Below are positions 9,235 through 32,700 of a stretch of 36,117 nt of DNA, piece after piece. Each line of letters opens with the position of its first letter. The stretch's first letter is position 1. The notes beneath the pieces were generated by a model. It worked only from the letters and a program-made list of their open reading frames with translations, searched no databases and had not been told where the DNA came from. This stretch comes from Octopus bimaculoides (lineage: Eukaryota): positions 83,262,749-83,298,865 of the forward strand of contig NC_068986.1 of assembly GCF_001194135.2 (NCBI RefSeq). The letters are read 5' to 3'. A program made the position numbers and the translations under genes.

Positions 9235-10315
9235 TACGCTTCCCTGATGAGTTAGAGTTGGATCAGAGCTGTCGGAGGAGTTAGCAGTGAAAGTTGGTGC
9301 ACACCAGGGATCTGTGTTGTCACCGTTGTTGTTGGCAATAGTGATTGACGTGGTGATGGAAAGTGCTAGAGAAGGATTGATAATGGAGATATTGTTTGCA
9401 GATGATCTCATTCTGATGAGTGAGATGATGGAGGGATTGAGGGAGAAGTTTTGGAAATGGAAGATGTTTGAAAGCAAGGGTTTGAAGGTAAACCTTGGGA
9501 AGACAAAGGTGATGGTGAGCAGGGTAGAAGGAGAAGTGTTAGTAAGGTAGATCCATGTGGTGTGTGTGGGAGGAAGGTAATGGCAACTGCAGTGTTGTGT
9601 GGAAAATGTGGGAAATGGATTCATGGTAGATTTAGGAAAATGAAGGTGACCCTAAGACTGGCAAGAGTTTTTATTTGTGGAAGATGTGAGAAAGGAGCTG
9701 GAGGGCTGGTGGAACCAGTGAGAGGGTTTTGTTATTTGGGAGATAGGGTGGATGTGAAGCAGTTGTGACAGCAAGAGTGAGACTTGGCTGGGTGAAGTTA
9801 AGAGAATGTGGAGCGTTATTATATGGGAAAAGGTTCGCTTTGAAGATGAAAGGAAAGGTTTATTGGAGCTGCATGAGATCTGCACTGCTGTATGGAAGTG
9901 AGACCTGGTGTCTGAGGGGAAGCAAAATGGCAATTTTGAGAAGGACCAAGAGAGCAATGTGTGGTGTGAAACTATTGGATAAAAGGAGGACTGAGGACTT
10001 AATGGGGATGATGGAGTTGGAGGAATCGGTGGAACAGCTGGCAAGGGCAAATGGAGTGCGGTGGTATGGACATGTGTTGAGGGGGGATGAGAATCATGCT
10101 CTGAGGAGAGCGCTTGAGTTTAAGGTGAATAGATCATGAAAGCGAGGTTGACCAAAGAAAACATGGAGGAGGACATTGGAAAGATTGGCTTGAGGAGAAA
10201 GGACACCCAAAACCGGATGAGATAGTGTGAGAGCAGTTGCTGTAAGAGTGAGGTAGGTCTGGCCACCCCCATTAACGGGGACAAACCCAGATTTAAAATA
10301 TTGGACATTGGTCAA
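9235..10315 (+). mobile_element. 5'-truncated RTE-clade LINE (RT C-terminal half and 3' end), frameshifted
   Basis: ORF pieces VKVGAHQGSVLSPLL, EILFADDLIL, GLKVNLGKTKVM, FCYLGD, ARVRLGWVKLRE, YGSETW, VRWYGHVLR are RTE/BovB-type RT and downstream motifs. Confidence 0.9.
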
Positions 10316-10720: not shown

Positions 10721-11068
10721 GTAAGTATATTTTTGTAGTAGTTTTTTTTGTAAAATTTTTTTCTAATTTAAAAAATCTTGTTTATGAAAATGGTGAGGAA
10801 ACATGGACTGAAAGATTTTAGGAATTAAAATGAATAGTTTCAATCCTAACTTAACAATATTTATAATGTACTTTTAATCTTAGCTTCCATTTATATTTTC
10901 TTTGTTTATTTGTAGAGACTTGTATGCTTGGATGGAATTTTATAAACTATTTAAATATTGAATGAATGAGAATTTTCTAGACATTGACATTGAAAGCACA
11001 AATAACATGTAAGCTTAACTGTGTGTGGATATCAATAATAGCATGGCACTTGGTTTTGAGGTTTTTCC

Positions 11069-11440
11069 TGTGTGGTAAGTAGCTTGCTTACCAACCACAT
11101 GGTCCCAGGTTCAGTCCCACTGTGTGGCACCTTGGGCAAGTGTCATCTACTATAGCCTTGGGCCGACCAAAGCCTTGTGAGTGGATTTGGTAGACGGAAA
11201 CTGAAAGAAGCCTGTCATATAAATGTATATATATATATGTTTGTATGTCTGTGTTTGTCCTCCAACATCGCTTGACAACCGATGCTGGTGTGTTTATGTC
11301 CCCGTAACTTAGCGGTTCGGCAAAAGAGACCGATAGAATAAGTACTAAGCTTATAAGGAAAAAGTCCTGGGGTCGATTTGCTCGACTAAAGGTGGTGCTC
11401 CAGCATGGCCACAGTCAAAAGACTGAAACGAGTAAAAGAG
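11069..11440 (+). mobile_element. tRNA-derived SINE (CORE-like, octopus-type) in intron
   Basis: TGTGTGGTAAGTAGCTTGCTTACCAACCACATGGTCCCAGGTTCAGTCCCAC (B-box-like GGTTCAGTCC), then CTTGGGCAAGTG, an internal TA/TG microsatellite and the 3' GACTGAAACGAGTAAAAGA. Three copies in the window. Confidence 0.85.
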
Positions 11441-11797
11441 ATATAAATGACTTTTTAGCTTTTGTATCATTTACACAATGAAAGTATCTGAATTAGGCTA
11501 CTAAGCCATTTAAACCAAAAGTCTCCAAGTAAAATCTTTGTTAGGTTAAGAATTTTTAGTCTTACATGATATACAAAATTAGTAATTATATGTTCCAAAA
11601 CAAGTCTATTATAAAGTATTTTTCTACATAACAAAAATCAATAACTTTCTCAAAGTGAGGCACATGTTTGTGCATTTTTGTTTGTGACAGATGGGAGAGT
11701 GAAGAGGCAGTAAAGATAGTTTTTCACTGTTCATATAAAATGTAAATTTTCAGTTAATTGTTTTCACATATGGAACCTTGTGTTAATTATATTTCAG

Positions 11798-12277: not shown

Positions 12278-12600
12278 TGTGTGGTAAGTAACTTGCTTGC
12301 CAACCACATGGTTCCAGGTTCAGTCCTACTGCATGGCACCTTGGGCAAGTGTCTTCTACTATAGCCTTAGGCCAACCAAAGCTTTGTGAATGGATTTGGT
12401 AGACGGAAACTGAAAGAAGCCCGTCATATATATATGTTTGTGTGTCTGTGTTTGTTGGTGTGTTTACATCTCCATAATTTAGCAAAAGAGAACGATAGAA
12501 TAAGTACTAGGCTTACAAAGAATAAGTCTTGGGGTCGATTTGTTTGATTAAAGGTGGTACTCCAGCATGGCCGCAGTCAAGTGACTGAAACAAATAAAAG
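12278..12600 (+). mobile_element. tRNA-derived SINE (CORE-like, octopus-type) in intron
   Basis: Same family as 11069-11440. Confidence 0.85.
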
Positions 12601-12842
12601 AATATATATACATATATACACATACATATGTACATACATATATATATACATGTATATATATACGCACATATATATATATATACATGTATCTATATATGCA
12701 TATATATATATNNNNNNNNNNNNNNNNNNNNNNNNNNNNNNNNNNNNNNNNNNNNNNNNNNNNNNNNNNNNNNNNNNNNNNNNNNNNNNNNNNNNNNNNN
12801 NNNNNNNNNNNTATACATACATATGTATATGATATAATGAGA

Positions 12843-13188: not shown

Positions 13189-13492
13189 ATCATCATCATC
13201 GTTTAACGTCCGCTTTCCATGCTAGCATGGGTTGGACGATTTGACTGAGGACTGGTGAAACCGGATGGCAACACCAGGCTCCAGTCTGATTTGGCAGTTT
13301 CTACAGCTGGATGCCCTTCCTAACGCCAACCACTCAGAGAGTGTAGTGGGTGCTTTTTCGTGTCACCCGCACGAAAACGGCCACGCTCGAAATGGTGTCT
13401 TTTATGTGCCACCCGCACAAGCCAGTCCAGGGGCACTGGCAACGATCTCGCTCGAAAATCCTACAGGAGCCAGTCAGGCGGTACTGGCAACG
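13189..13492 (-). mobile_element. RTE-LINE 3' end with (CAT)n tail on + strand, runs into gap
   Basis: Near-identical to 17203-17457 and the reverse complement of 4495-4795. Confidence 0.85.
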
Positions 13493-14268
13493 NNNNNNNN
13501 NNNNNNNNNNNNNNNNNNNNNNNNNNNNNNNNNNNNNNNNNNNNNNNNNNNNNNNNNNNNNNNNNNNNNNNNNNNNNNNNNNNNNNNNNNNNNNNNNNNN
13601 NNNNNNNNNNNNNNNNNNNNNNNNNNNNNNNNNNNNNNNNNNNNNNNNNNNNNNNNNNNNNNNNNNNNNNNNNNNNNNNNNNNNNNNNNNNNNNNNNNNN
13701 NNNNNNNNNNNNNNNNNNNNNNNNNNNNNNNNNNNNNNNNNNNNNNNNNNNNNNNNNNNNNNNNNNNNNNNNNNNNNNNNNNNNNNNNNNNNNNNNNNNN
13801 NNNNNNNNNNNNNNNNNNNNNNNNNNNNNNNNNNNNNNNNNNNNNNNNNNNNNNNNNNNNNNNNNNNNNNNNNNNNNNNNNNNNNNNNNNNNNNNNNNNN
13901 NNNNNNNNNNNNNNNNNNNNNNNNNNNNNNNNNNNNNNNNNNNNNNNNNNNNNNNNNNNNNNNNNNNNNNNNNNNNNNNNNNNNNNNNNNNNNNNNNNNN
14001 NNNNNNNNNNNNNNNNNNNNNNNNNNNNNNNNNNNNNNNNNNNNNNNNNNNNNNNNNNNNNNNNNNNNNNNNNNNNNNNNNNNNNNNNNNNNNNNNNNNN
14101 NNNNNNNNNNNNNNNNNNNNNNNNNNNNNNNNNNNNNNNNNNNNTATATATGAACAGTAAATTGTTTTTCAAAACTTATATAAATTTTAATTTATTGTGA
14201 AATTGAATGAAACTATGCCATTCATATTTATCTTTTCAACGTTTGATTTATTTTTCATTCAAATATAG

Positions 14269-15449
14269 GTAATTTCAACAGGCTTTTTTCTGGCTACAAA
14301 CTTGTTCAAGTTCATACTTTCTTAAGTTCTGGACAAACTCTACCAGAACAAATACCTGCACTCAGATCACCAATGATTACCTGTAAGATAACAAGTCTCT
14401 TGTCAGATAATCCTAAAGTAAGGTTATTTGAAGAGAGTGTTTCTTTACACCAGAAGCTTCAAAAAAGACCCAGTAGTTTAAAAATATTCCCACCAACATC
14501 TAGAAAACATGTTTGCTTTTTAGGGGACCTTACACCTTATGGAATCCTTCAGCAAATTGAGCATGGTGAATTTTTGAGAGAAGTTTATAGTCATAGGCTG
14601 AAAAATACAGCTCTTGAAAAGTTGTTTACTATACAGACCATTCCAGAAAAACTTCAGTACCAAAATTCTCTTGCTTTTGCAGTTGGCTTTCTTACACAGA
14701 AACAATTTAGTCGTATACATGTTGGTAAATCTCTTCCAGATTTTGCTTCTAGGTCCATGAATAAACATCTTAATTGTCCTAAATTAAATATGTTTTCTTC
14801 ACAAGTAGAAAATGCTATAAATTCTGGTCAGTTTATTTTTAAAGAAGCACATCCATCCACCAAACGTTTAGTTAGCCTTTTTAATTTTACAGATATTATT
14901 AAATCTTCTTCATTGGAAATTCTTCAAACTACGTTATCTTACTTGTGCAATAAAATCTCTCCTGTTTGTCGTAAGGATAAGCCTTGCATAAGAATTACAT
15001 CCAAGGGGTTAACAGAAACTGTCAGAATGACTGACAACTACTTCAAAAATCTCATTGTAAACCCTTTGTTTACTGAAATTTCAAAGTTGTCCACATTTCC
15101 AGCTTTTCAGGGAATTATGGAAAGTATCGACAATAGCAAAATATTTTTCCATACATATTCCTCCAAGCTTTCTTTTCTATTGTATTTGCTTCGAACTCTG
15201 GGGCTCACAATTACTGAAAGGCCTCTGTCAGTGAGTCATTTCATTTTTGAAGTTTATGCTAATAGTGAAGGCTCAAAATTTTTCCGTATCCTTTTTAATG
15301 GTGAAGATTTAACAAATCAAGTGCTCTCTTGTAAGAATACTGCAGCTTCATTTTCAAATCTCTGTCCGTTAAGCATTTTAAATAATTTTATTACTCATGG
15401 GATATTTAAACAATTTAAAAGTCAAACCTACACAGAAGCATGTCAGTAG
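14269..15449 (+). CDS. PXYLP1: PXYLP1/ACPL2-like histidine acid phosphatase domain, terminal exon; catalytic motifs absent
   Basis: Acceptor ATAG at 14268 and a 1.18-kb open frame. From recall of human PXYLP1: GYKLVQVHTFLSSGQTLP vs FKLVSVHVFIRHGDRYP; CFLGDLTPYGILQQIEHGEFLREVY vs CEMGELTQTGVVQHLQNGQLLRDIY; NSLAFAVGFL vs SGLALLYGFL; YSSKLSFLLYLLRTLGL vs YSAHDVTLSPVLSALGL; FRILFNGEDLT vs VRILYNGVDVT; LCPLS vs MCPLE; YTEACQ* vs YYDACH. Spliced product ~484 aa vs ~480 aa in human. Confidence 0.9.
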
Positions 15450-16171
15450 AATCTTNNNNNNNNNNNNNNNNNNNNNNNNNNNNNNNNNNNNNNNNNNNNN
15501 NNNNNNNNNNNNNNNNNNNNNNNNNNNNNNNNNNNNNNNNNNNNNNNNNNNNNNNNNNNNNNNNNNNNNNNNNNNNNNNNNNNNNNNNNNNNNNNNNNNN
15601 NNNNNNNNNNNNNNNNNNNNNNNNNNNNNNNNNNNNNNNNNNNNNNNNNNNNNNNNNNNNNNNNNNNNNNNNNNNNNNNNNNNNNNNNNNNNNNNNNNNN
15701 NNNNNNNNNNNNNNNNNNNNNNNNNNNNNNNNNNNNNNNNNNNNNNNNNNNNNNNNNNNNNNNNNNNNNNNNNNNNNNNNNNNNNNNNNNNNNNNNNNNN
15801 NNNNNNNNNNNNNNNNNNNNNNNNNNNNNNNNNNNNNNNNNNNNNNNNNNNNNNNNNNNNNNNNNNNNNNNNNNNNNNNNNNNNNNNNNNNNNNNNNNNN
15901 NNNNNNNNNNNNNNNNNNNNNNNNNNNNNNNNNNNNNNNNNNNNNNNNNNNNNNNNNNNNNNNNNNNNNNNNNNNNNNNNNNNNNNNNNNNNNNNNNNNN
16001 NNNNNNNNNNNNNNNNNNNNNNNNNNNNNNNNNNNNNNNNNNNNNNNNNNNNNNNNNNNNNNNNNNNNNNNNNNNNNNNNNNNNNNNNNNNNNNNNNNNN
16101 NNNNNNNNNNNNNNNNNNNNNNNNNNNNNNNNNNNNNNNNNNNNNNNNNNNNNNNNNNNNNNNNNNNNNNN

Positions 16172-17202: not shown

Positions 17203-18655
17203 CATCATCATCATCATCATCATCGTTTAACGTCCGCTTTCCATGCTAGCATGGGTTGGACGATTTGACTGAGGACTGGTGAAACCGGATGGCAACACCA
17301 GGCTCCAGTCTGATTTGGCAGAGTTTCTACAGCTGGATGCCCTTCCTAACGCCAACCACTCAGAGAGTGTAGTGGGTGCTTTTACGTGTCACCCGCACGA
17401 AAACGGCCACGCTCGAAATGGTGTCTTTTATGTGCCACCCGCACAAGCCAGTCCAGGNNNNNNNNNNNNNNNNNNNNNNNNNNNNNNNNNNNNNNNNNNN
17501 NNNNNNNNNNNNNNNNNNNNNNNNNNNNNNNNNNNNNNNNNNNNNNNNNNNNNNNNNNNNNNNNNNNNNNNNNNNNNNNNNNNNNNNNNNNNNNNNNNNN
17601 NNNNNNNNNNNNNNNNNNNNNNNNNNNNNNNNNNNNNNNNNNNNNNNNNNNNNNNNNNNNNNNNNNNNNNNNNNNNNNNNNNNNNNNNNNNNNNNNNNNN
17701 NNNNNNNNNNNNNNNNNNNNNNNNNNNNNNNNNNNNNNNNNNNNNNNNNNNNNNNNNNNNNNNNNNNNNNNNNNNNNNNNNNNNNNNNNNNNNNNNNNNN
17801 NNNNNNNNNNNNNNNNNNNNNNNNNNNNNNNNNNNNNNNNNNNNNNNNNNNNNNNNNNNNNNNNNNNNNNNNNNNNNNNNNNNNNNNNNNNNNNNNNNNN
17901 NNNNNNNNNNNNNNNNNNNNNNNNNNNNNNNNNNNNNNNNNNNNNNNNNNNNNNNNNNNNNNNNNNNNNNNNNNNNNNNNNNNNNNNNNNNNNNNNNNNN
18001 NNNNNNNNNNNNNNNNNNNNNNNNNNNNNNNNNNNNNNNNNNNNNNNNNNNNNNNNNNNNNNNNNNNNNNNNNNNNNNNNNNNNNNNNNNNNNNNNNNNN
18101 NNNNNNNNNNNNNNNNNNNNNNNNNNNNNNNNNNNNNNNNNNNNNNNNNNNNNNNNNNNNNNNNNNNNNNNNNNNNNNNNNNNNNNNNNNNNNNNNNNNN
18201 NNNNNNNNNNNNNNNNNNNNNNNNNNNNNNNNNNNNNNNNNNNNNNNNNNNNNNNNNNNNNNNNNNNNNNNNNNNNNNNNNNNNNNNNNNNNNNNNNNNN
18301 NNNNNNNNNNNNNNNNNNNNNNNNNNNNNNNNNNNNNNNNNNNNNNNNNNNNNNNNNNNNNNNNNTCTCTGTACATGGCTCGCACAGCTCTCACTAGCCA
18401 TTCTTCTATCCCAAGTTTCCTCATTGACCACCAGATAAGGGATCGGGGGACCCTGTCAAAGGCTTTCTCCATGTCAACGAAAGCCAGGTACAGAGGTTTA
18501 TCCTTGGCTAGGTATTTCTCTTGCAACTGTCTCACTAGAAATAAGGCATCAGTAGTGCTTTTACCTGGCACGAACCCAAACTGCATCTCATCTAAATTGA
18601 TTCGCTCCCTAATTAGTTGGGCTATGACCCTCTCTGTAACTTTCATAACCTGATA
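17203..18655 (-). mobile_element. 5'-truncated RTE LINE (RT fragment 18366-18655; 3' end 17203-17457; middle in gap)
   Basis: Minus strand KVTERVIAQLIRERINLDEMQFGFVPGKSTTDALFLVRQLQEKY...AFVDMEKAFDRVPR, uninterrupted. The RTE tail lies on the same strand across the gap. Joining across the gap is an inference. Confidence 0.8.
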
Positions 18656-19787
18656 ACAAAAGCTTTCAACTGCTTCTAGGGAAATGTTCAGGTATAATTA
18701 ATTTTACTTGTGCCCTTAGTGCTTACTGTACACGTATATCTTGCACAAATGAAATGTACTTTCTGTTAGCCTATCTATGATCCCACTATGCCTCTTGTAT
18801 GTCCATAGCTTACACTGGATGCGTTAAGGAATTTCTATCTACTTGTTTTCTGCATATTGAGCTTAGATAATTTTCTGATGGTAGCATGATCCCATCTTTT
18901 ATTTTTGCTTACTTTACTGCAAGGGCTTCTGATTATTTTAGTTATATTTAGAGACTTTTCTTTGAAGCTCTAAAGTGCTAATATTTAATTACCATTCCTA
19001 ATTAATAGCATTCTAGTTCCAAAAGAAAACATACAGTAATGTTTACACTTATGGTAAATGTTAAAAATATAGTTTACTTTATGTGACTTAGATATCCTAT
19101 TATTAAATTTATTTGAAAATTATAGTTTTTTTTCTTTACATCAGGGTGTTCTGCTTTTCTAAAATATTTTCATGATTAATTATGTTACATATTCATTTGT
19201 CTGTCTGTCATCTAATTTGGGATTGTATATAAAATAAAATCACATACAGAGTGTATTAGCATATATATGTCATTTGTAAACACAAATGCATACACAGGTT
19301 TGTGTTTAAATTTATGTTTATTATATGCAGTTATGACAGTTTAATTTATACATACACATAACTCGCATACAAGTGAGTTAAATACATTGGATGATTGTTA
19401 TTTATGCTTCTTTTATACAATTAAGAAATAATAAAATAAATGTTGGTGTGTAAAAATCTATCACTGAATGTGTTCATCCGTGCAGGATTGGAAAAATCTT
19501 TGATATTTTGGCAGTAACAAGTTGGGCAAAATACCTTGTATTTAGATCTCATGTTGATTAAAATACTGTTAAATTTTAGTGAGCTTTGTCAGTAAAATCA
19601 CAGCAGCAATTGAATAACCATACCACCTCCCTATAAATTTGGCCACTTATTGAAGTATGGATCCTCAGCTTTTCAACTTTTTCAGTAATCCTTTTAATTA
19701 AATCACTTTTGCATTTAGTGTTTTGAACAGATTTATAATCTACAAAAAAAAAAACTAATTTCTTTCATTTTTGAATACACATTACTT

Positions 19788-20386
19788 GGATCTTTTTTAA
19801 AACGGGGGCCACATTTTTCATTGACGAAACACTTTGAAACTTGGAACACTGGTAGAATGTGTCATATAAAACATCTTTTTCTCTTAGTCTTCTTAAAAAA
19901 AAAAGAAATCCCTAAGTTATTCCATGTTAAAGTTGTCGTATTTCTGTAATTTCAACCAACCACTGACGTCCATTCAGCCGATATACATTAAGTGCCGACT
20001 ACATAAACAAACGATTCTGAAACAATTCTATCGGTGATAGGGTTAGGGTTAAGGTAAAACAGCAAATTTAAAAAGAAAAGAGCAAATAAAACGAAGAGAA
20101 AAAAAAGAAAATGAAAAAAGCAAATTTAAAATGAAAAAAGCAAATAAAACGAAGCTATGGCTTAATCAGCCAAAGGAGTAAATGTAAACAACTGAATACT
20201 TGTCAGTGATTGGTTGAAATTATCGAAATAAGACAATTTTTTACATGAAATAAATTCGAATACAAAAATATTTTTCTGTTCTATAACACAAAATAGATAA
20301 GTATACGAAGTTTGAAAGTCTTTCGGTACCAAAAACACTACGTAAAACATTAATGAAAAATGTGGCCCCCGTTTTAAAAAAGATCC
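19788..20386. mobile_element. 599-bp MITE, Merlin-like
   Basis: 35-bp perfect TIR GGATCTTTTTTAAAACGGGGGCCACATTTTTCATT, with further imperfect inner similarity. Exact 8-bp TSD CATTACTT at 19780-19787 and 20387-20394. Confidence 0.9.
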
Positions 20387-21000
20387 CATTACTTTCATTA
20401 TTTGGGAATCTAATACAGCTGTGTTACAAAATTTTAATCTTTATCCATGTAATTAAAAGCATTGGATTGAGATTAATTTTTATGAACAAACTTTTATCTC
20501 GCTTTAAAAATTAAAATTGGGGATGGGGAGATTCTAAACCTGATATTCAAAACAAAATCTGGAGAAAACAAGGTCCTATAAAAAAAGTTAGACTGGGGTT
20601 AAACATTTCCAACATAACTGTATGTGGCTAAATTTGTAGTTCGTGTCAACAAAGAAATAATAATTATTATTGTCATTGATGAAAGTGAAATGGAAGTATT
20701 AGACAAAATACTTGTTGGCACTTGGTTTCTTTTCTTTTTTTTTTTTTGTCTCTAGGTGTAATAAAATATGTTCAGTCAATATAAATTGATAGCACAAATC
20801 TAAATTAGTAGCTTTGTGTTGGTACAGCTGTGGATTCCTAATGAACACTATCTCTACATCTGTTGACAGAAACTTGCAATAAAAACATAGTTTTGCTGCT
20901 ATGCTGAATAAAGCATTAGTTAGCTCAATTTTCATGTTACTGAGTTGTTTAAAGATTTCTCCTTTTCTGTTCAGATGTTTAGTCAGTATCTCTTGATACA

Positions 21001-21028
21001 GCTGACCACAGCCAGTGAGCTGAGCAGC
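21001..21028 (+). promoter_or_regulatory. IRE-like stem-loop, copy 1
   Basis: GCTG-ACC-ACAGC-[CAGTGA]-GCTGA-GCAGC. C six nt before the loop, 4-bp upper stem plus an A-A mismatch. Confidence 0.45.
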
Positions 21029-21307
21029 ATCTGTGATACTTTATAATATATCATTGTAATAATCTTTTTTATACAAATTATGAAAAACAATTTTTGTGCA
21101 TGTTATGCTGGATTTTTTCTTTTTTAGATTCAAACAGGCACAAAAACATTAACATCACACATTCATATTTCATTACATTTTCATATATTTATTGTTTTAT
21201 TTTTTTTTTATAACAATGTATTATTTTTATATGTTATTTTTTATTTTATAATTTTTCCCCCTTTTAATTAAAGAGGGATTAGATGCCCCCTTATATACTA
21301 ATGGCTA

Positions 21308-21340
21308 TCCTTGTGTCAACCAGTGTTTTGTTGAACAGGA
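21308..21340 (+). promoter_or_regulatory. IRE-like stem-loop, copy 2
   Basis: TCC-T-TGT-G-TCAAC-[CAGTGTTTT]-GTTGA-ACA-GGA. Confidence 0.4.
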
Positions 21341-22891
21341 AACATCAAGAATTTTATTGCATTGATACTCTTATTTTCTCTGCTATAAACAATATTTTCA
21401 GGTAAGTTTAGAGGATAATTTTGAGAACAATACTGAGAAGATTGACTTGTTTTTGTTTATTTGTTATTAAGATTTTTTTTACTGAAAAATTTATACTCTA
21501 GATCAGTAGAATCTCATTAAAAAAAACAATTAAAATTGAAGAATCTCAATTCCTTTTACACAAAAAGAATATAAATCTGATGTTTTCTGTAGCAAAAAAT
21601 TTGTTTTATTACTTCCAGGATTGCTTGGTATTGACTGGAAGTAATTAACTGTATTAATCACAATTTGAAATATAGCAAAAATTAACCTAAAATAACATTA
21701 AAATAATACCTACAATAGCAGCAGCTTTAGTAAGTCTTCAATGCATTTTTTTCTTTAACTTACAATCAGCAACTAATTTTAAAAGTTTTTAAAGTAGACA
21801 ATTTGTTTTTGCTAAGGGAAAAGTGTTACAGGAGAATGTTTAACATAATAAATACTAATACAAAAGGACCTATGTATGTAATATAAGGGGTTGAAAGATT
21901 TTGTTCAACTGAGATTGAGCAAATTGTAGATATCCCTGCCCTTCTTGAGGTGTTTAAGATCTAAGAACAGGCAATGGAAATATCTTTAGTGTGGTCGGCT
22001 GATAGCAAGTTTTGGACAATATAAATAATGGAGATTAGAGAGGATCTGGTCTCTTGTGAACACAATTAGCTATGTTTTTATTTGTAAGCCACAAATATTT
22101 TATTTGCCTCATTCAAATTATTACATATCGTGTTCTATTAGAAGAAAAGAAAGTACATGAATATAATTGGCAACTTAGTGTTTGGTTATATTATAAATAA
22201 AGTATTCAAAAAATTAGTTACTTGAATTCAAATATCTAAAAAAAATTTTCTCTTGGTTTTAGTTGCAGCTATACTACATGTTGATATCTATTAGGTGATG
22301 GTTGGATGCACAACAATCCATCCTATGTAATGTTTATTAAGTACAGACTACCATCACCAAATGAATACCTCAATGGACACTGAGTAATTCCATTTACAGT
22401 TATAAACTTAGTTTAAGAGTGAAGTGAAATTTATCTCAAATTCCCACTGTAAATCCAGCAGATCATTAATATGTTAATGAACCCGAGCTGACTATAATGA
22501 AAGTAAAGGAATTAACAGATATTATTAGCAATAAAGCACAATCAAATTCGAAGACCTAATCTTCAATGATGTGATGAATAAAAGAAGAAAGGGAAAAAAA
22601 AATACTGCTAATTATTTAGTTCTCCGACTGTTTTCAATGTTGTGTTTGTGTGTGTGATACCTCTTTACAGTTAGATTTACTGAACTGGCAAGACTTCAGC
22701 ATTTTTCAGTAGATGATGTCTACAGATTTGATCAGGTCTGAAAAATTAGATAGCTTTTTCTTAATAATTTGTCTAATTTAGTTTCCTCATAAAAAATGCT
22801 GGTTATTTCAGTTATGAATGCTGCATACATACACATACACACATGTATATATACACACACACAGACAGACAGACACACACANNNNNNNNNN

Positions 22892-22945
<54 letters not shown>

Positions 22946-23820
22946 CACACATAATATTCATCCATCACAACATTACTGTAAGTAATGTAAAATCTATGGG
23001 TATTCATTTAGAGACATAATAATAGCTTTAAACTTTTTATTTAGACAAAAAGAATCATGCAACTCTGTTTGACATTTAATTATAACTAAGGAAAAAAAAC
23101 CTATGAAGGTCTGAAAGATAATTGTTGCTTGGTAAAAAAAAAATGAAATTAAAGATGTATGTGACTTGTTTTAATGTGAAGAATAATAAACTTTGCAAGA
23201 GAATGTAGGTAACTAATCTGTTTGTATAACATTGTCATTTGTATTTCTTTCACTGAGATTCAAATTCACCTAGTTAGATTCCCTGAATAATGAATATTGT
23301 ATATAAAAGCTACTTATTGTTGGTTCTTTTATAATGGTGGTTTCAACTACTTGATCCACTCTTATGGGTGCTCAGTTCTCTCTTCAATTCTCATCTTCAC
23401 CAACTCACCTTTAGGAGTATGTCCCAAATTTATTGTAATTACAGCATCATAGATTCACTTATCTATATGAATGTTTCTGTTTTAATTTAAAAGGTCATCT
23501 CCTGTTTTTCAGATCTGATCTACCTTTTGGTAAATGTAACGAGTTTGGTGGTGGTGGATTTCTGTTGGGGGAGGTGGGTTTTCACTTGACTTGTAACACA
23601 TTACAGTTCCAGTACTGTGAACTTCTAAATATCTTCAGATAAGAGTTTGTCACTATCTGTTTAACCACTGCGTGGCTCTTTTCAGTTTTCTAAATATCCT
23701 TGCAACATAAAATCTTGTACTGTTACTTATGCACTACTGCTGCTGCTATTATTCATTATTGATGTTATTTCTTCATAAGATCTCTATTAATAGAAATGAC
23801 CAGTTGCCATCTAGGGAAGG

Positions 23821-23857
23821 GGGTTCTGTCCTCAGCCAGTGATGTTGAGCAGAACTC
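23821..23857 (+). promoter_or_regulatory. IRE-like stem-loop, copy 3
   Basis: GGGTTCTGT-CC-TCAGC-[CAGTGAT]-GTTGA-GCAGAACTC. 9-bp lower stem, CC bulge, 5-bp upper stem. Confidence 0.5.
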
Positions 23858-24204
23858 ACTAGCTGTCTATTTTTTATATGCTGGCTTTCCCCAAGGAATT
23901 TTATTTTTTTGTATATATTTCTAAATCTAATGTGATATTATTATCAGTGTTATTTTCAATAACCTACAGTGTTGAAATGTTTGCTAATATGGTAAAGAAA
24001 TGTATTTAAAAGAAAAAAATGTAACATCTGCTAAAAGAATATTTACTAAAATATATAAAAGTGGCTCATGAGCTAATATTTCGTAAAATCTGTGTGTTTG
24101 GCCTGTCTGCTAGTAGGTTTATCATTGTTCATTTGATAGCATAGTTTTTGCTTCAAGCCTTACTCCATTTTATTATGTTTTGTTTCGTCTACTTTCATTA
24201 TTAT

Positions 24205-24395
24205 TAGTGGTGGATTGGCAGAATGCTTAATGTCAGAAAAGTGCTTTGCAATATATGCTATACATTCTGAGTTCAAATTCCACTGATGTCAACTTAACTC
24301 TTTCAGAGTTGATAAAATATAGTACTAGTCATATTCTGCAATTGATGGTATTCACTATGCCTGCTCTTGAAATTGCTGGTTTATACCTCAATTAG
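24205..24395 (+). mobile_element. Decayed SINE (same family as 5312-5420)
   Basis: GGTGGATTGGCAGAATGCTTA...ACATTCTGAGTTCAAATTCC...GTTGATAAAATATAGTACTAG...ATTAGAAATC. Confidence 0.5.
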
Positions 24396-24816
24396 AAATC
24401 TTTTTTTTTTTTAATTTATTTATATTCATCCACTGATATATGAATATTTATTCATAAATAGATGTATGCATAATTTTTGGGAATGATGAATCTTGAAGCA
24501 GATAAAGCTATGAATAATAGTGTGCAAATATCTGGTTAAAAAAATAGAATTGGATGGGGAAAAAAAATGTCAAAGGCTGTCTGTAGGATTTGATCCCACA
24601 TCTGTAAGCATGACTGGAATTCAACCATTGACAAAAGCAATCCTTTGAATTTCTTGATCCATTTTAGAAATTTAGCAATGAGAATTGTTTGTAGTTGACA
24701 TCAAAAGAATTTAGAACCTTCGAGAATGTGAAACATGTTTATTTATAAATAGTTACAAGTGTAGTTATTCATAGATAGGGATATGTATGTATATAGGTAT
24801 GTGTATTATCTCTCTC

Positions 24817-26047
24817 ATATATATGTCAAACACACATATACAAGGTGTGTGTTGTTAGTTTGTCGGGTGGCTGCATATAATCTCAATGCCCTTGGTGTTA
24901 AAACACCCGATAGCGAGTCATAGCCAAGTGAGACAACTCACAGCGACAAACATTGATGTTTCATCATTATTGTGACTTGTTAATGCCATGTACCAAGCAA
25001 GAGATCTGCAGTGAGCTGTCTATGACTATATGCTAAATGGTTCAAGAACCATCTGCTGGCATGTCCCAACATGTCATGCCATAAAAAAAATTAGAGTATG
25101 AATTAGAAGTAGCTTCAAGTACATAAACAAAGTTGAACACACACACAGGTGTGTGTGTTAGTTTGTTGGGCAGCTGCGTTTTTTAAATATAAGAATATAA
25201 TCTCAGTACCCTTGGTGTAAAAATACCTGAAAGCAAGTCAACCAAGTGAGACAACTCTCATCAGATCCCCTTTTTTTTTCACAGCGAAAGACATCGATGT
25301 TTTGCCATTGTTGTGATTTGTCAATGCCATGTACTGAGCAAGAGGTCTGCTGTGAGCTAACTGGCTATGATTATATGCTAAGTGTTGGGACATGCCAGCA
25401 GATGGTTCTTAAAAATCATTTAGCATATAGTCATAGCTGGTTAGACAGCTCACAGCAGACCTCTTGATGAGTACACAGCTTTAACAAGTCACAACAATGA
25501 TGAAACTTTGCTGTCTGTCACTGCGAAAAGAGAAAAAAAAAGGATCTGATGTGAGATGTTTCACTTGGCTATGGCCTACTTTCAGGTGATTTTACACCAA
25601 GGGCGTTGAGATTATATTCCTTACACTTCAAAAAATGCCGCCCAACAAACTAACAACACTCGAACCTTGTGTATATGTTTGACTTTATATACCTTGAGCT
25701 GCTTCTAATTCATATTTTAATTTATTTGGGACATGCCAGCAGATGGTTCTTAAACCATTTAGCATACAGTCATAGACAGCTCACAGCAGACGTGTTGCTT
25801 GATACATGACAATGACTAAACATCAATATCTGTCGCTGTGGAAAAAAGGGATCTGTTGAGAGTTGTTTCACTTGGCTATGGCCTGCTTTCGGGTATTTTT
25901 GCACCAAGGGCATTGAGATTATATTCTCTTATGCCTTAAAAAAAAAAAAAAATGCAGCTGCCCAACAAACTAACAACACACACACACACCTCATGTATGT
26001 GTGTTCGACTTTGTTTATATACTTCAAGCTGCTCGTAATTCATATTT
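24817..26047. repeat. Palindromic tetramer of a ~300-bp unit (two forward copies then two reverse copies)
   Basis: Units at ~24817-25071 (+), ~25088-25381 (+), ~25383-25723 (-) and ~25725-26047 (-). Shared blocks include TGTTAGTTTGTTGGGCAGC, ATATAATCTCAATGCCCTTGGTG, AGCCAAGTGAGACAAC and AACCATCTGCTGGCATGTCCCAA, or their reverse complements. Confidence 0.9.
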
Positions 26048-26671
26048 GCTCATAATTCATAAAGCTGTAAATTAGTTGAATTCTAGTGTAATTCAAAATA
26101 TGTGAAATAATAATTTGTTATCACATTTTAAAAACATCTAGTCCTAATAGGGAATGGTAATTTTAAAATTTCTTGCATAAAACAATAACCTTGAGATATT
26201 ATATACTTACAATATAGAAATCTACTCTGACATTTGTTACTAAGCTTATGTAAACCTGATGCTTGTAATTAAAATTACTGTTTAAAGATTTTTCATGAAT
26301 TTTATGTAACTTTTTTGTGTTGAACTTATTTTTCCAGTTTACCTCTAGGTAAAAATGTTTATAAAATGTTCATTGACTTCTGAATTTTTACTAATTACAC
26401 CGTTTTCATTTTGATTTTGAAATTTTTCTTTTCTGTTGAGATAACTTAGAAATGTACACATTCTTTTTTTTTTTTTTTTTTTTTTTTGTGTAATTTTATA
26501 TAGATTCTTTGTGTTTTTGGTTTTTTTCTTGTCTTTTAGATTCAAAACAACTTTAGCATATTTGATGCAATGTGTTTTAATTTCATTTCTAATTGCTAAA
26601 ATTTTTACATGTTAATATTTTTTAAATTTCACTTTTGAAATTATTTTCCTGGATAAATTCCTGTTTTATTA

Positions 26672-26710
26672 TGGCATCAGTGCGTCAACCAGTGAGTTGA
26701 GCAGATGACA
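26672..26710 (+). promoter_or_regulatory. IRE-like stem-loop, copy 4
   Basis: TGGCATC-AG-TGC-G-TCAAC-[CAGTGA]-GTTGA-GCA-GATGACA. Perfect 5-bp upper stem, canonical 6-nt loop, but the single bulge is G rather than C. Confidence 0.5.
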
Positions 26711-27976
26711 ATTTTTCTGTTATCTTGGTAACATCGTATTATCCAGTGACCAACTCTATTTAGTTTTCATTCATCACCAACTTAACCATAATTTCTAATT
26801 TCTCCTTGAAATGTTTTTTAATGATTGATCTAAACATTGTGAGGAAAATGTATTATTTTTATTTATTTATTTTTGAAGCCTTAATTTATTTTGTCATAAT
26901 GTTCTTTGATGCTCCCCTTTTATTTAGATGCTATAGAGTTTTTACTTTTATGTAAATCTTATTTTTTCAAAGCACCATAAACTAACTGGATTGTATAGAC
27001 ATCACTTGGTGGTTTAGTCACCAAGTAACCAACTCTAGACAGATCAGGATGGCAACTCAATACAAGCTTATGTTAGTCTATTTGGCAAATACTAGACAAC
27101 TCCAAGGATAATTAGGTTTTATTAGGCAACACTATACAAGCCAAAGTAGTGATGAATTGCTATAGAGTTGTACAATACCATATGAGTGGGTGAGAGATTT
27201 ATCATATTAAAAAAGTCATTGAAGTTAATTTCTTAGAGATGCCATCCACATGAAAAGCAATAGTTAATTTAGTGTTAGATATGTATAATGTATCATGCGT
27301 TAAAATCCTAATTGGAAATATTTATGCGGTGGTGGTTTTGCATCATGCGCAACTGGAATATTGTTACATTTATGTAACAATAAGTAAGCTGTGAAATCTA
27401 TGCTCTGTTTTGGAAGTCTAATAAGGATTAATATATGACTAGAGCTGTTTGTGTTACGCAACAAATATAGTCAATTTTGGCCAACACCAGAAACAACTTC
27501 AAACTTTTATGAAGGCGGTTACAAGCCATAGCTGCTTGTCAGGCACTCCATTTGATTTAACCCAGTTCATCTCTGTATAAATATTCCTTTAAAAAAATTG
27601 TATCTTATCTTAGTTTAAAGTATTCTATACATAAATTAAATACCAGCAGCTTATATAGTGTTAAATAGCAAGAATAATACAATGAACCTGATAGAGAAAA
27701 TGAATATCTATTTAGTGTATTATTGATTATAAATACAAACTTATTTATGTCATACATATTAAGGTTTTATAATTTATTAGGAATGCAAAATGAAAAAAAA
27801 TTAGTTGGGGGAATGGTATGCATAAGACAATTTAATTTTGTATATTCTTGAATTTAATTAAATAAACTCATTTAATGTGGTTTGAAAGTTTCTGCAATCC
27901 AGTATGGTTATTGAAAAATTTTAAAGAATATTTAAGTTACTGTTGGTCATTGGATACATAAACGCCATTGTAAACG

Positions 27977-28013
27977 GGTTTCTGTCCTCAGCCAGGGAAG
28001 TTGAACAGAGCTC
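27977..28013 (+). promoter_or_regulatory. IRE-like stem-loop, copy 5
   Basis: GGTTTCTGT-CC-TCAGC-[CAGGGAA]-GTTGA-ACAGAGCTC. Clear paralog of copy 3. Confidence 0.45.
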
Positions 28014-28487
28014 ATTATTTGATCTGATTTTATTCAGAATAAATTATAACAAAAAGAGATATACAGAAAGACCCATATATTTTGATACAGAATTTTATCC
28101 CAAATTGTTATGTATTTATTTTCATCCCAATTTTGTCTTTACTTTAAAAATAAAGTGATAAGAAAAAAAAAATTTGTTTTGTTTTAAGTATTTGGAATCC
28201 AAGAGATGTAACCCAAATCTATTTTCAAAGATAATTTCTGTCATCATGCATTCATTTTAACATTCACTTTATTTTGCTTGCATGGGTCTAATAGAATTCC
28301 TTGTGGCAGATTTTTCTCTGGCCAGAGGGTCTTCCAGCCCCACAGCTCTCATCTGCTTCCAAGCATGGTAGATATATATATGGCCAGATCTGTTTCTACG
28401 GAAGATTGGAAATGATGCTATTTGTATGCCTGACTCATTTACAACTACTGCATGATGTGAAGACAAGGTGATACATACACACACATA

Positions 28488-29067
28488 CGAAGTCTGATCA
28501 ATAAGTATCCAGACTGTTGCCATAGTAATGCAGATGAAGCACAGCAGAGTGAAGCTGCTTGGCAAAAATTGATCTTGCACTCTGCTGTGCATGCACACTC
28601 AGCTTTAACATTCTCACTTCACTGTTTACAGCAATGCTTGGAAGGAAAGTGTATAGCATGTGATTGTTGCATTAACCATGACAGAATCTGCATCAAATTT
28701 TGCCAAAAGCTTGGAGATACTAACTCAGAGGCCTATGCAAAGTTGCAGAAAGTGTATGGAGAGGAGTGTATGAGCCTGAAAAATGTGGATATTGACAAGC
28801 ATTCTGGGATACCTGCAACCAGCAGAACTGAGAAAAACATTGCAGATGTGCAAGCAGCTATAAGGAGAAATTTTCAAATCACCATGCATGAATTATCTGA
28901 GTATGTGTAGATTAGTTACGGTTCAGTTCTGTACATTATCACTGGAGATTTGGGTATGAGACGTATGTCTGGCAAGCTTATGCCAAAACTGCTATTAGCT
29001 GACCAAAAAGACAATCGGGTTTCAGTTGCACAAGATCTCCTGGATTGTGTTGAGAATGATGAAAACT
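28488..29067 (+). mobile_element. Mariner (Tc1/mariner) 5' remnant with N-terminal transposase
   Basis: TA|CGAAGTCTGATCAATAAGT TIR-like start. Translation RICIKFCQKLGDTNSEAYAKLQKVYGEECMS...SGIPATSRTEKNI...ITMHELSEYV*ISYGSV...DLGMRRMSGKLMPKLL..DQKDNRV matches the mariner DNA-binding domain and WVP-linker region. Confidence 0.85.
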
Positions 29068-29160
29068 CTGTGTAGACTTCAGAGCAGGTATCACCAAGAT
29101 TTTGGCAAAGTTTGATGCAAATCCCATTCCTATTACGTATGATAGTTTCAAATTTCCTCA
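29068..29160 (-). mobile_element. Inverted second copy of the mariner N-terminal coding segment
   Basis: Minus strand NGICIKLCQNLGDTCSEVYT mirrors RICIKFCQKLGDTNSEAYA at ~28685-28745. Confidence 0.75.
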
Positions 29161-29384
29161 TGGCTCCTTTGTATACTTTGTATATAGCAGTAGTAGACTT
29201 TGTATACAGCAGTAGTAGCGGTAGTCATGGAACATCATTGAAGAGCAAGTTATAGAACACCACTGAAAGGACTAAGATAATAGGGAAGGCCAACTCATGG
29301 TATGATAGCCACAAATACCAGAGTGTCATGTTCGTAGGGCATTAAAAAGTTGTGGTCCCTTGAACCTCAAGCTTTTACAATATT

Positions 29385-29640
29385 GGGTTTATATTGTCAA
29401 CGGAGAAGATAGTACCTTTCGTACTGTGCAGTGCCATCCAGTTCGGGGATTGTTGTAGCTTTCGATTCCGAAATTTGGAGTTAGACCCACCATTATTTGC
29501 CATATGTATAGCACTGCAGATCTCTCACATCTCCTTTCCAGGGAGTAGAGTCCCAGTTCCTTTAACTTCTCCCAGTAGCCCATATATTTTACTGACTCTA
29601 TCTTTGTGTAGTGTTGCTAGATTGCCTCTAGTTTTACTCT
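29385..29640 (-). mobile_element. CR1/L2-clade LINE C-terminal fragment
   Basis: MGYWEKLKELGLYSLERRCERSAVLYIWQIMVGL matches the post-RT 'Y.ERL..L.L.SLE.RR.R' motif of CR1-group LINEs. Confidence 0.75.
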
Positions 29641-29705
29641 CTCTGATGACCACACACACACATGTATATATATGCACACATATATACATACACACACACA
29701 CACAC

Positions 29706-32700
29706 AGATATATGCTCCTCAACCGGGGCTACCGGATGGGCTGAAAGACCAATTCTATGACACCCTCTTGCAAACTACCTCGTTGATGAGTCACAGGGAC
29801 CTTCTCTTTGTGGCTGGTGACTTCAATGTTCATGTCGGACGTCGTGCTGGAGGCTATGGCTTCGGTTCCCGCAACGAGGAGGGAACCAGACTGCTGGAGT
29901 TCTGTGATGCAACCGATCTTATGGTTTGCAATACCAACTTCAGGAAACCTGCCTGTCATCTAGTCACCTACCGATCCGGCAGACACTCTAGGCAAATCGA
30001 CTACATCCTCGCCAGAAATAGGGAAAGAGGGCGGCTTATAAATGCCAAAACCTTCTCTGGCGAAGAATGTACCCCTCAACACAGATTAGTAGTAAGCGAC
30101 TTCAGGATCAAGGCAAAATGGGTGCCCAGAAGTAGACCAGCTTGGAAGAGAAGGGTGTGGAAGCTTAAAGACCCTGCAAATGGACGAAGATTTAGAGACA
30201 TGTTACTCAAAGCATTTGACGAAATAGAAGGGGATATAGCATCATATAACGTGGAAGACAATTGGAGATTTCTGCGGGACAACCTGCTGAGAGCCACCAA
30301 CCAGATCTGTGGCTGGTGTAAAGTCCCCTCTCGACCCAGAGTAATGTGGTGGTGGAACAAGGAGGTAGACAGGGCTATTAGACAAAAGAAACAGGCTTGG
30401 AAGGACTGGCAGAACGGTGGTAGCAGGGAATTGTACCAATCTGCCAGAAAGGAAGCTAGGCGACAGGTTTATTTAGCCAGAGGGGAAGCAGATAAAAGAT
30501 TTGCCAATGTCCTGCGCCGTGAGGACCAAAGACATGAGATATTTCGTGTTGCAAGACAGTGTAGGAGAGAGAATAGTGATGTCGTAGGAGAGAAATGTGT
30601 TCACATGGATGATGGTACGCTTGCACTAAATGAGGCTGCAAACAAAGAGGTCTGGAGATGCCACTACAATAGATTGCTCAATAAAGAGAATGAATAGGAG
30701 AAAGAGAGTCTGCCATATGTTGACCCAACAGAGGGACTAGCTATCCGAGGTGACAGTACCATGGTAGATAAAGCAATTAAGAGTATGAAGACAGGGAAAG
30801 CCCCCGGCCCATCAGGAATCACTGCAGAGATGCTCAAAATATCTGGCAGTGTCAGCTATAGCCTAGCCACCCATATTACGAACCAGGTGATACACGAAGG
30901 AGTCATACCCAATGACTGGTGTAGCAGCATCATAGTCAACTGCTACAAAGGTAAAGGTGACGCTTTAGATACAAATAATTACAGAGGCATCAAGCTGTTA
31001 GATCAGGTTATGAGTTACGGAGAGGGTCATAGCCCAACTANNNNNNNNNNNNNNNNNNNNNNNNNNNNNNNNNNNNNNNNNNNNNNNNNNNNNNNNNNNN
31101 NNNNNNNNNNNNNNNNNNNNNNNNNNNNNNNNNNNNNNNNNNNNNNNNNNNNNNNNNNNNNNNNNNNNNNNNNNNNNNNNNNNNNNNNNNNNNNNNNNNN
31201 NNNNNNNNNNNNNNNNNNNNNNNNNNNNNNNNNNNNNNNNNNNNNNNNNNNNNNNNNNNNNNNNNNNNNNNNNNNNNNNNNNNNNNNNNNNNNNNNNNNN
31301 NNNNNNNNNNNNNNNNNNNNNNNNNNNNNNNNNNNNNNNNNNNNNNNNNNNNNNNNNNNNNNNNNNNNNNNNNNNNNNNNNNNNNNNNNNNNCTCTATGC
31401 TGATGACCTTGCACTAATTGCGGAGTCACTATCAGAACTAGAGGAGAAGTTTCAGGTGTGGAAGCAAGGACTAGAATCGAAGGACCTTAGAGTCAACTTA
31501 GCTAAAACCAAAATCCTGATAAGTAGGAAGGTAGAAAAAACACAAACCCCTTCAGGTAGATGGCCCTGCTCAGTATGTAGAAAAGGTGTAGGTAGTAACT
31601 CTATAAGATGTACCAAGTGCAAGCTATGGACACATAAGAGGTGCAGCAATATCAAAGGCAGGTTAACTAGGAAGTTAGCTTTTGTATGTGGCAGATGTTC
31701 AGGTGCAATAAACACTGTAAGCAAACAGGAAACAACTGTCTCATTCCAGGGAGAAAAACTAGAGGTAGTTGATAGCTTCTGCTATTTGGGTGACCAAGTT
31801 AGTAGTGGGGGTGGGTGCACTGAAAGTGTAGCTGCTAGAATAATAATAGCCTGGGCAAAGTTTAGAGAGCTCTTACCTCTGCTGGCGACAAAGGGACTCT
31901 CACTCAGGGTAAAAGGCAGACTGTATGATGCAGGTGTACTAACAGCCATGCTACATGGCAGTGAAACATGGGCTGTGACTGCTGAGGACATGTGTAAGCT
32001 CGCAAGGAATGAAGCCAGTATGCTCCGATGGATGAGTAATGTCAGTGTGCATATACCACTGAGTGTAAATGATTTAAGAGAAAACTGGTTATAAGAGGCA
32101 TTAGTTGTAGTGTGCAAGAGAGAAGACTGTTGGTATCATCATAGAATTTGTAGAGATAAGGTTAGCTATATAAAGAAGTACTGATTTCTAATTGTGGAGG
32201 TAATCTTTTGAATGGGGTAGACCCCAGGAAGACATGGGACAAAGTGGTGAAAAATGAACTTCACAGAGGAGATGACAAGGGACTGAAGCAGGCAATTTGC
32301 TGTGCTTGAGAAGACATGTCAAGCTAAGTAAAATCATGGCCATTCATACATACAGACATGTCCTTTTTGGCCATACTTCCACCTCCCCTGGCACACACAC
32401 ATAATTTGGTCCTCCGGCAAAACACCTCCACCACCCACTAGGCCCCCACTCTCCCTCACACGCCTCTACATATCCACATATATCCCCTTCCCAACCACTC
32501 CAATTCCTCTCATCATCACTTGCTATCTCTATCTCCCTTCACACTCTTATGGAATATCTCCTCTATTCCCTCTATACTACTTATATCCCCCTCCACTGTT
32601 CCCTGTGAGCAGGCCCTCTCTCCTACTCTGACTTGTCTCTATCTAACTCTCTCCTTCCTTGTCCAACTGGGGTAGCCAAGTATCTCCTCTGTAGTAAGAT

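Follow-up and report, generated by a model that had tools for sequence, protein, structure and literature searches.

Five copies of a short paired motif lie on the sense strand downstream of the coding sequence of a PXYLP1-like (2-phosphoxylose phosphatase 1-like) gene of Octopus bimaculoides; the motif is deeply conserved in cephalopods and is present in transcripts. The locus under study is a 36-kb stretch of the O. bimaculoides genome (36,117 nucleotides of contig NC_068986.1), which we call the window and whose positions are used throughout. An earlier reading of this DNA, made from its letters alone (the sequence-only reading), had proposed five dispersed hairpins resembling iron-responsive elements (IREs). 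The reading that we favour, and to which we give about an even chance, is that the five copies form a cis-acting, IRE-shaped array of RNA stem-loops, conserved among coleoids, on sense-strand PXYLP1-like transcripts and that an RNA-binding protein reads this array. The element is so far undescribed: nothing comparable was found in Rfam, and the literature searched (for its sequence strings, octopus IREs, a link between PXYLP1 and iron, and cephalopod conserved non-coding elements) held no earlier description. To our knowledge, the cis-regulatory RNA elements described from cephalopods are very few.

Five paired copies on one strand

The consensus CARCCAGKG-N1-4-GYTGARCAG, with 14 invariant positions, starts at 21009, 21317, 23833, 26686 and 27989, each time on the + strand (Table 1). 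No further consensus copy occurs on either strand of the window, and when up to three substitutions were allowed, a fuzzy scan of the window and of the O. vulgaris locus added no weaker ones. The 5′ half, CARCCAGKG, is seen five times against 0.79 expected on both strands, and the 3′ half, GYTGARCAG, five times against 0.98; none of 100 dinucleotide-preserving shuffles held five of either half. In 5/5 cases a spacer of 1–4 nt separates the 5′ half from a 3′ half on the + strand. Because each half occurs five times where about one is expected, and because neither half is ever seen without its partner or off the + strand, we do not attribute the array to chance. Likeness between copies is confined to about 25 nt, and copies 3 and 5 resemble each other over 57 nt at 84%.

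All five hairpin sites of the sequence-only reading are present where it had placed them, and so are its two alternating subtypes, which run B A B A B along the array. The variable upper-stem pair is also as it described: copy 1 has G-C, copies 2 and 4 have A-U, and copies 3 and 5 have G-U. It had called this a compensatory series; G-U, A-U and G-C are reachable by single steps, the series is statistically not significant, and we see in it no evidence of true covariation. Nor is the surrounding DNA otherwise non-repetitive, as had been stated, since the region holds microsatellites, a 1.2-kb foldback (24825–26050) and an insertion resembling a miniature inverted-repeat transposable element (MITE; 19783–20391). 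None of the five copies lies in these repeats.

Conservation of the array in cephalopods

In O. vulgaris (L001) all five copies are found in synteny, with the same order, strand and subtype and with identical cores. O. sinensis (L002) has copies 1–3, and the sequence of its locus stops short of copies 4 and 5. Over 18648–28400, substitutions between O. bimaculoides and O. vulgaris amount to 6.2% and differences of any kind to about 10%, and the 100 core nucleotides show 0 differences where about 10 would be expected (resampling P ~0.002). The blocks of perfect identity around the five copies measure 132, 87, 113, 56 and 79 nt; copy-bearing blocks rank 1, 2, 6 and 10 by length among the 489 perfect blocks of the region, and copy 3 sits in the second longest. 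Copy 4 of O. vulgaris has a 2-nt deletion, which turns the AG bulge into a G·G (1x1) mismatch and keeps both helices.

The comparison with Argonauta hians (L093) reaches further. Its main protein exon is 67% identical, and all five copies follow its stop codon with order, strand and subtype unchanged. From the Octopus stop codon to 28175, 1041 of 12726 nt (~8%) can be aligned with Argonauta, and this alignable downstream DNA consists of the copy-bearing islands and one 63-nt block. The cores differ at 3 of 100 nt, all of them free 3′ loop bases or the R position: copy 1 has the same sequence in O. vulgaris, O. sinensis and Argonauta, copy 2 sits in a 57-nt block that is 100% identical in Argonauta, copy 3 differs solely at the last loop base and the R position, copy 4 has an identical core, and copy 5 has one loop change.

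A search of 1.84 billion representative proteins extended the comparison beyond octopods. P0025 matches the Octopus protein best, at 43% identity, followed by bivalve and gastropod PXYLP1 at 25–30%; because of this ranking we take P0025 to come from another cephalopod, probably a decapodiform. Since its whole coding sequence is uninterrupted, the Logan contigs that carry it are spliced mRNA. The longest of them, L088, holds an exact motif (CAGCCAGTGGTAGTTGAGCAG) at 3583, on the sense strand and in the 3′ untranslated region (UTR), 1.7 kb 3′ of the stop codon. L094, a genome contig from a species related to that of L088, has the motif downstream of the coding sequence at 18474 (the L088 copy) and again at 19519, where CTGACCACAGCCAGTGTGCTGAGCAGC...TGTGATAC is a clear ortholog of Octopus copy 1. 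L094 reaches downstream to 21032, and its two copies are a lower bound. Nothing aligns between L088 or L094 and Octopus outside the core of about 30 nt. The other Logan contigs of this ortholog stop short of the motif position.

About 120 nt of the L088 mRNA span 5.4 kb of L094, which suggests a possible intron in the 3′UTR of the distant ortholog, with the reservation that L088 and L094 come from different species. Compared with L088, the independent Logan mRNA contigs L090–L092 end or diverge at one 3′UTR point (L088 ~2238–2265), near the 5.4-kb alignment jump, a pattern compatible with an alternatively spliced 3′UTR intron.

A covariance model (R1) built from 13 motif instances scored all copies at 43–57 bits and one O. 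vulgaris copy-4 match at 30 bits, with noise at or below 11.6 bits. It found no match on either strand of ~68 kb of unrelated Octopus loci and the rest of the loci, and none in the 10 kb downstream of an outgroup PXYLP1-like locus (L099). In a pattern scan of metagenomes subtype B gave 0 matches and subtype A 81 single matches with unrelated flanks, which is chance level. The high-copy transposable element that the sequence-only reading had set against its own proposal was not seen in the DNA sampled, and its view of the motif as selected agrees with what we find: synteny and near-invariance in O. vulgaris and Argonauta hians, three copies in O. sinensis and recurrence in a distant cephalopod-like lineage. 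On these comparisons, the motif is under purifying selection across octopods and the distant lineage. It is also better conserved than the encoded enzyme, with at least two copies kept where the PXYLP1 protein is only 43% identical.

Two other blocks belong to the same alignment. One of them, short and shared with Argonauta, lies between copies 1 and 2 (21157–21195, CACACATTCATATTTCATTACATTTTCATATATTTATTG). The 63-nt block mentioned above (19438–19500, AAATGTTGGTGT...TATCACTGAATGTGTTCA...GTGCAG) is 84% identical to Argonauta L093:15580–15642, contains no motif and lies 1.5 kb upstream of a conserved splice acceptor.

Transcripts of the host gene

The open reading frame (ORF) at 14373–15449, part of the main coding exon, is 93% identical to the O. 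vulgaris protein P0001. A second O. vulgaris product, CAI9724620.1 (P0022), has 159 amino acids, the last 23 of which (MFSQYLLIQLTTASELSSICDTL) map to 20975–21046. Copy 1 therefore lies inside an annotated terminal exon, and the O. vulgaris gene range ends exactly at the TAA of this exon. PASA supplied the alternative isoforms of the O. vulgaris annotation on the basis of Iso-Seq and RNA-seq data (PMC10700109), and the isoform thus provides indirect evidence for + strand transcription and splicing at the copy-1 exon. The short isoform, in which 14417/14418 is joined to 20975, would yield a product without most of the histidine-phosphatase domain. Its donor, GTAAGG, is present in three Octopus species, and the distant ortholog L088 has AAAGTGCGT (GTGCGT) there.

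The acceptor at 20975 is kept in Argonauta and the reading frame of the exon is not, with ATG changed to GTG and a 1-nt indel. Coding conservation was rejected as an explanation on this ground, as the nucleotides of the copy-1 exon are nearly identical where Argonauta loses the ATG and the frame, and also on the ground that the copies differ by frame-shifting indels of 1–3 nt between paralogs and orthologs. We likewise rejected the islands as internal exons: they contain no conserved donors, and the GTAAGT at 21403 is specific to O. bimaculoides.

At the other end of the array, an AATAAA is conserved in O. vulgaris and Argonauta, likeness between species stops just downstream of it, and it is the probable signal for the mRNA 3′ end. 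A mostly non-coding terminal exon of ~7.2 kb, from the acceptor at 20975 to just past this AATAAA, probably bears the whole set of five stem-loops. The truncating isoform would end in this exon, and the full-length mRNA probably also uses it in its 3′UTR. Such an exon, large and non-coding, combined with a truncating isoform would be of interest as gene architecture in a gene of the proteoglycan pathway.

Folding and proposed reading of the motif

The arms (U/A)CARC and GYUGA are complementary in 13 of 13 instances, and pairing covers 95% of upper-stem cells. In copies 2–5 the paired arms are UCARC and GYUGA; copy 1 has an A·A mismatch at n09–n24. The G·U pairs are kept in orthologs, and the opposite strand would give C·A in their place. 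Only the 3′ part of the loop varies in length, U-A, C-G and G-C all occur as the pair next to the invariant CUG/CAG, and copies 2 and 4 build their lower stems from unlike sequences. A sense-strand RNA stem-loop is the best reading of this pattern, its fold in vivo being something that we infer, and recognition of the motif must be largely sequence-specific.

Such an array would most probably work as follows. Each copy, sitting in the large terminal exon that is mostly non-coding, would fold into a 5-bp upper stem, (U/A)CARC with GYUGA, closed by a loop that begins CAG(U/G)G and continues with 1–4 free bases; a bulge of 1–3 nt would lie on the 5′ side, above a short lower stem in which the invariant 3′ CAG takes part. 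A sequence-specific RNA-binding protein would read the invariant edge of the loop together with the stem, and several bound proteins along the exon would act multivalently to set the stability, translation or localisation of the mRNA. This protein reader and this regulatory outcome are inferred parts of the proposal. As a short, defined element with natural variants in loop length and bulge, the motif is usable as bait for its binding protein.

Several results weigh against this reading. RNAalifold retains just 4 bp at −2.75 kcal/mol and no compensatory pair, and the covariation score was reached by 24 of 500 shuffles, a marginal excess. The upper-stem sequence is so nearly invariant that pairing is neither proved nor disproved, and such a stem is just as compatible with a linear or DNA motif that is recognised by its sequence. 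Fold energies of single copies are unremarkable (z-scores −0.25 to −2.2), the whole conserved islands show no unusual fold stability, and Argonauta copy 4 carries two uncompensated changes in its 3-bp lower stem. The background check for extra copies covered ~68 kb of unrelated Octopus DNA. Transcript support within Octopus is limited to copy 1. The + strand RNA that the sequence-only reading had implied is supported: copy 1 lies in a sense-strand terminal exon and the motif of the distant ortholog in an mRNA 3′UTR.

Comparison with iron-responsive elements

In outline the copies resemble the IREs of Rfam (RF00037/RF02253) and the five-IRE array of transferrin receptor 1. They share with both the bulged stem-loop, the 5-bp upper stem and the start of the loop, which is CAGUG in all copies save copy 5 (CAGGG), with the bulge on the 5′ side; with the transferrin receptor 1 array they also share the presence of several sense-strand copies in a 3′ non-coding region. 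The upper stem has five base pairs with at most one mismatch, as in IREs, and a sense-strand location in an mRNA UTR is seen in the L088 3′UTR and for copy 1 in the O. vulgaris terminal exon.

We re-implemented the SIREs core rules (PMC2896125) in our own script, using canonical loop motifs only and tolerating a single mismatch or a single 3′ bulge. Octopus, Argonauta and the distant lineage each have a copy 1 that passes (C8, n07–n25 pair, CAGUGA/U hexaloop, one mismatch), and the other four copies fail. For copy 4 the G at n8 is the sole failure, and SIREs lists one G8 motif (PMC2896125). IREs have an unpaired C just 5′ of the upper stem; copies 1, 3 and 5 could have C at this position, and G is found in copies 2 and 4 and at L094:18474; the minimum-free-energy fold of copy 3 pairs its candidate C8. 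Crustacean ferritin IREs have a G bulge. The hexaloop CAGWGH (n14–n19) that defines IREs is seen in copies 1 and 4 (CAGUGA), and the family as a whole does not keep it: the loop has 9 nt in copy 2, 7 nt in copy 3, 7 nt with CAGGG in copy 5 and 8 nt in the extra distant copy. For copies 2, 3 and 5 and the extra distant copy (loops of 7–9 nt) the script found no allowed 3′-bulge solution.

The family also lacks an Rfam score as an IRE. At the gathering score there is no IRE match in the window, and IRE_I and IRE_II gave none at E<=10 in 20500–28500 or in stretches of 56–61 nt around copy 4 (26665–26720) and copy 3 (23810–23870). Unlike IREs, the octopus elements have loops of 6–9 nt rather than a strict hexaloop, a G bulge in two of five and one CAGGG loop, and their stem sequence is itself conserved, (U/A)CARC / GYUGA with a 3′ RCAG. 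Unlike the transferrin receptor 1 array, which occupies ~0.7 kb, they are spread over ~7 kb and sit in a gene with no known link to iron. The sequence-only reading had remarked that none of the five is fully canonical; this is borne out for the family, in which just copy 1 passes relaxed rules of the SIREs type. Its further suggestion of IRE identity does not carry over to the family as a whole. Judged by sequence, the family is IRE-shaped and not a member of the IREs as defined, and an iron regulatory protein (IRP) may bind copies 1 and 4.

The copies could nevertheless be genuine, lineage-variant IREs, which cephalopod IRP1 would bind so as to stabilise or repress PXYLP1 mRNA according to iron status, in the manner of the five 3′UTR IREs of the vertebrate transferrin receptor. 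The shared loop start and bulged stem, the behaviour of copy 1 and the near miss of copy 4 speak for this. Against it stand the Rfam results and the long loops, the spread over 7 kb in place of a cluster within 1 kb, and the literature searched, in which we found no link between PXYLP1 and iron. The non-IRE deviations, loop lengths among them, are moreover kept over the full Octopus–Argonauta distance, and because they are conserved, the reader of these elements would tolerate features that IRPs are not known to accept. We consider this explanation unlikely. Another reading, which we find quite improbable as it stands, is a coleoid-specific array, better conserved than the protein encoded upstream, in which the PXYLP1 transcript or the 7-kb terminal exon (as scaffold or decoy) is a multivalent target of IRP1 or of another hairpin-binding protein. 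If IRP1 does read the array, it would be the first multi-IRE 3′UTR of the transferrin receptor type outside vertebrates, and it would tie iron status to proteoglycan synthesis. The motif variants could test whether cephalopod IRP1 accepts non-canonical IREs.

Alternative explanations

Ordered by the weight that we give them, the rivals of an RNA stem-loop array are a DNA-level motif, the true IRP-responsive array just discussed, small-RNA targets and non-functional relics. As a DNA motif, the copies would be sites for a transcription factor or zinc-finger protein in five conserved non-coding elements, acting as downstream or intragenic enhancers or insulators, and the hairpin would be incidental. 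Arms and loop edge have been conserved as sequence and have gained hardly any compensatory changes in a very long period, which is what such sites would show; the islands, at 150–400 bp, have the typical size of conserved non-coding elements, and the hairpins are thermodynamically weak. A DNA site does not account for the orientation of at least 13 instances, all on the sense strand of the gene, and a spacing between halves that varies by 1–4 bp is rarely tolerated by a double-stranded DNA site. The two halves can pair with each other, and their G·U pairs would form in RNA of the + strand alone; a mature mRNA contig contains the motif; and a conserved splice acceptor and poly(A) signal delimit the conservation. 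Together these points make a DNA motif fairly unlikely in our view.

The two conserved blocks and their spacer of 1–4 nt also resemble seed and supplementary pairing, so that the motif could be a bipartite target of a microRNA (miRNA) or PIWI-interacting RNA (piRNA), with a 3′ seed match in GYUGARCAG and supplementary pairing to CARCCAGKG across a variable central bulge. By reasoning alone, the variable R and Y could be read through wobble by U and G. This would require one or two G·U wobbles within the seed, the variable K and U/A positions would be left without a common partner, and the self-complementarity of the blocks would be a coincidence; we regard such targets as very improbable. Barely credible, and largely refuted, is a non-functional origin, in which the copies would be relics of an old interspersed repeat (a short or long interspersed nuclear element (SINE or LINE) tail, MITE or Helitron hairpin) or of an ancient local tandem duplication. 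The short likeness with sharp edges and the window's wealth of transposable elements would suit relics, and the B A B A B order suggests duplication of a B+A unit. Relics would not be expected to stay syntenic, ordered and near-invariant in Octopus, Argonauta and the distant lineage while their flanks are saturated; there is no decay series of weaker copies, and 0 copies were found on both strands of the 68 kb of unrelated Octopus DNA or the rest of the loci. An interspersed repeat was rejected on the same grounds, the copies being strictly syntenic in four lineages. Duplication is the likely origin of the copies and does not explain their retention.

Returning to an RNA stem-loop read by a protein, we compared the motif with other known elements. 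The Smaug/Vts1 element likewise has a short stem, specificity in the 5′ bases of the loop, a variable 3′ loop length and several 3′UTR copies; only copy 5 (CAGGGAA) fits its CNGG(N0-3) loop, whereas the other four read CAGU, with U at loop position 4, and a Smaug recognition element was rejected for that reason. The Roquin constitutive decay element and the histone stem-loops are, like the octopus motif, short protein-read hairpins more conserved than the UTR around them; their loop and stem consensus differs, and no such family was matched in Rfam. Searches of the window and of short stretches gave no Rfam match at the copies, the only ones being miRNA-like matches on the foldback repeat and on microsatellites, and a tRNA scan found no tRNAs.

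A miRNA precursor was discarded because hairpins of 11–14 bp are too short and have no Rfam match. C/D or H/ACA small nucleolar RNAs and k-turns do not fit in boxes or lengths and have no Rfam match either. By eye, key positions mismatch those of CTCF- or NRSE-like motifs, Helitron or hAT ends, recursive splice sites and the IRE1/XBP1-type loop.

Features of the window

Table 1. Positions of the motif copies, conserved islands, host-gene features and assembly gaps in the window.
Feature	Position	Strand	Description
Copy 1, subtype B	21001..21028	+	GCUG-ACC-ACAGC-CAGUGA-GCUGA-G-CAGC; hexaloop, C bulge, A·A mismatch at upper-stem base
Copy 2, subtype A	21308..21340	+	UCCU-U-GU-G-UCAAC-CAGUGUUUU-GUUGA-AC-AGGA; 9-nt loop, G bulge
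Copy 3, subtype B	23821..23857	+	GGGUUCUG-UC-CUCAGC-CAGUGAU-GUUGAG-CAGAACUC; 7-nt loop, G·U pair in upper stem
Copy 4, subtype A	26675..26707	+	CAUC-AG-UGC-G-UCAAC-CAGUGA-GUUGA-GCA-GAUG; perfect 5-bp stem, hexaloop, G bulge
Copy 5, subtype B	27976..28013	+	GGGUU-U-CUGU-CC-UCAGC-CAGGGAA-GUUGA-ACAG-AGCUC; 7-nt CAGGG loop
Island with copies 1 and 2	20946..21352	+	72% identity between Octopus and Argonauta
Island with copy 3	23740..23916	+	79% identity to Argonauta
Island with copy 4	26624..26774	+	82% identity to Argonauta
Island with copy 5 and conserved AATAAA	27927..28169	+	86% identity to Argonauta
Main coding exon, PXYLP1-like gene	14268..15449	+	Stop codon 15447-15449
Internal donor in main coding exon	14417..14423	+	AAA/GTAAGG; joined to 20975 in short isoform
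Annotated alternative terminal coding exon	20975..21046	+	MFSQYLLIQLTTASELSSICDTL*, preceded by acceptor ttttctgttcag
AATAAA	28149..28154	+	Conserved in O. vulgaris and Argonauta
Assembly gap	22882..22891		Between copies 2 and 3, in a (CA)n/(GACA)n-(TA)n microsatellite; outside the element
Six further assembly gaps	2906-3136, 12712-12811, 13493-14144, 15456-16171, 17458-18365, 31041-31392		

The chromosome-level O. bimaculoides assembly has the gap at 22882–22891 as well; this gap affects neither a copy nor a reading frame. In O. vulgaris, whose sequence has no gap here, the order is collinear, with anchors 166 nt apart against 240 nt in the window. The gap at 15456 begins 7 nt past the stop codon, leaving the proximal 3′UTR of the O. 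bimaculoides gene unread.

Among the repeats, the MITE-like insertion at 19783–20391 is ~610 bp long and is flanked by 40-nt inverted repeats (19783–19822 and 20352–20391) that are 95% complementary. It is missing from the O. vulgaris ortholog (0% aligned over 19788–20388) and looks like a lineage-specific MITE or DNA transposon. The foldback at 24825–26050 is made of direct and inverted units of ~320–340 nt, with arms of up to 91 nt that are 89% complementary; it gives spurious sub-threshold miRNA matches, such as MIR827 at 25341–25465 with 42 bits against a gathering score of 65. A repeat of ~170–300 nt, probably a SINE, occurs at 4430–4723 (−), 13265–13490 (+), 17203–17457 (+), 11068–11447 and 12278–12542, translates to ...LQLDALPNANHSESVVGAFTCHPHE... 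and has many copies on both strands of the O. vulgaris and Argonauta loci.

Further downstream, 29394–32123 (+) is a LINE-like retrotransposon with an endonuclease/exonuclease/phosphatase ORF (29672–30697) and reverse-transcriptase ORFs, interrupted by the gap at 31041–31392; its relatives are annotated as 'craniofacial development protein 2-like' in Octopus genomes. Other reverse-transcriptase fragments lie at 9287–10139 (+) and 17360–18646 (−). At 28569–29161, inverted fragments (28686–28744 and 29064–29122) that are 78% complementary encode ...KFCQKLGDT..., a peptide that resembles the N-terminal helix-turn-helix of mariner-type transposases.

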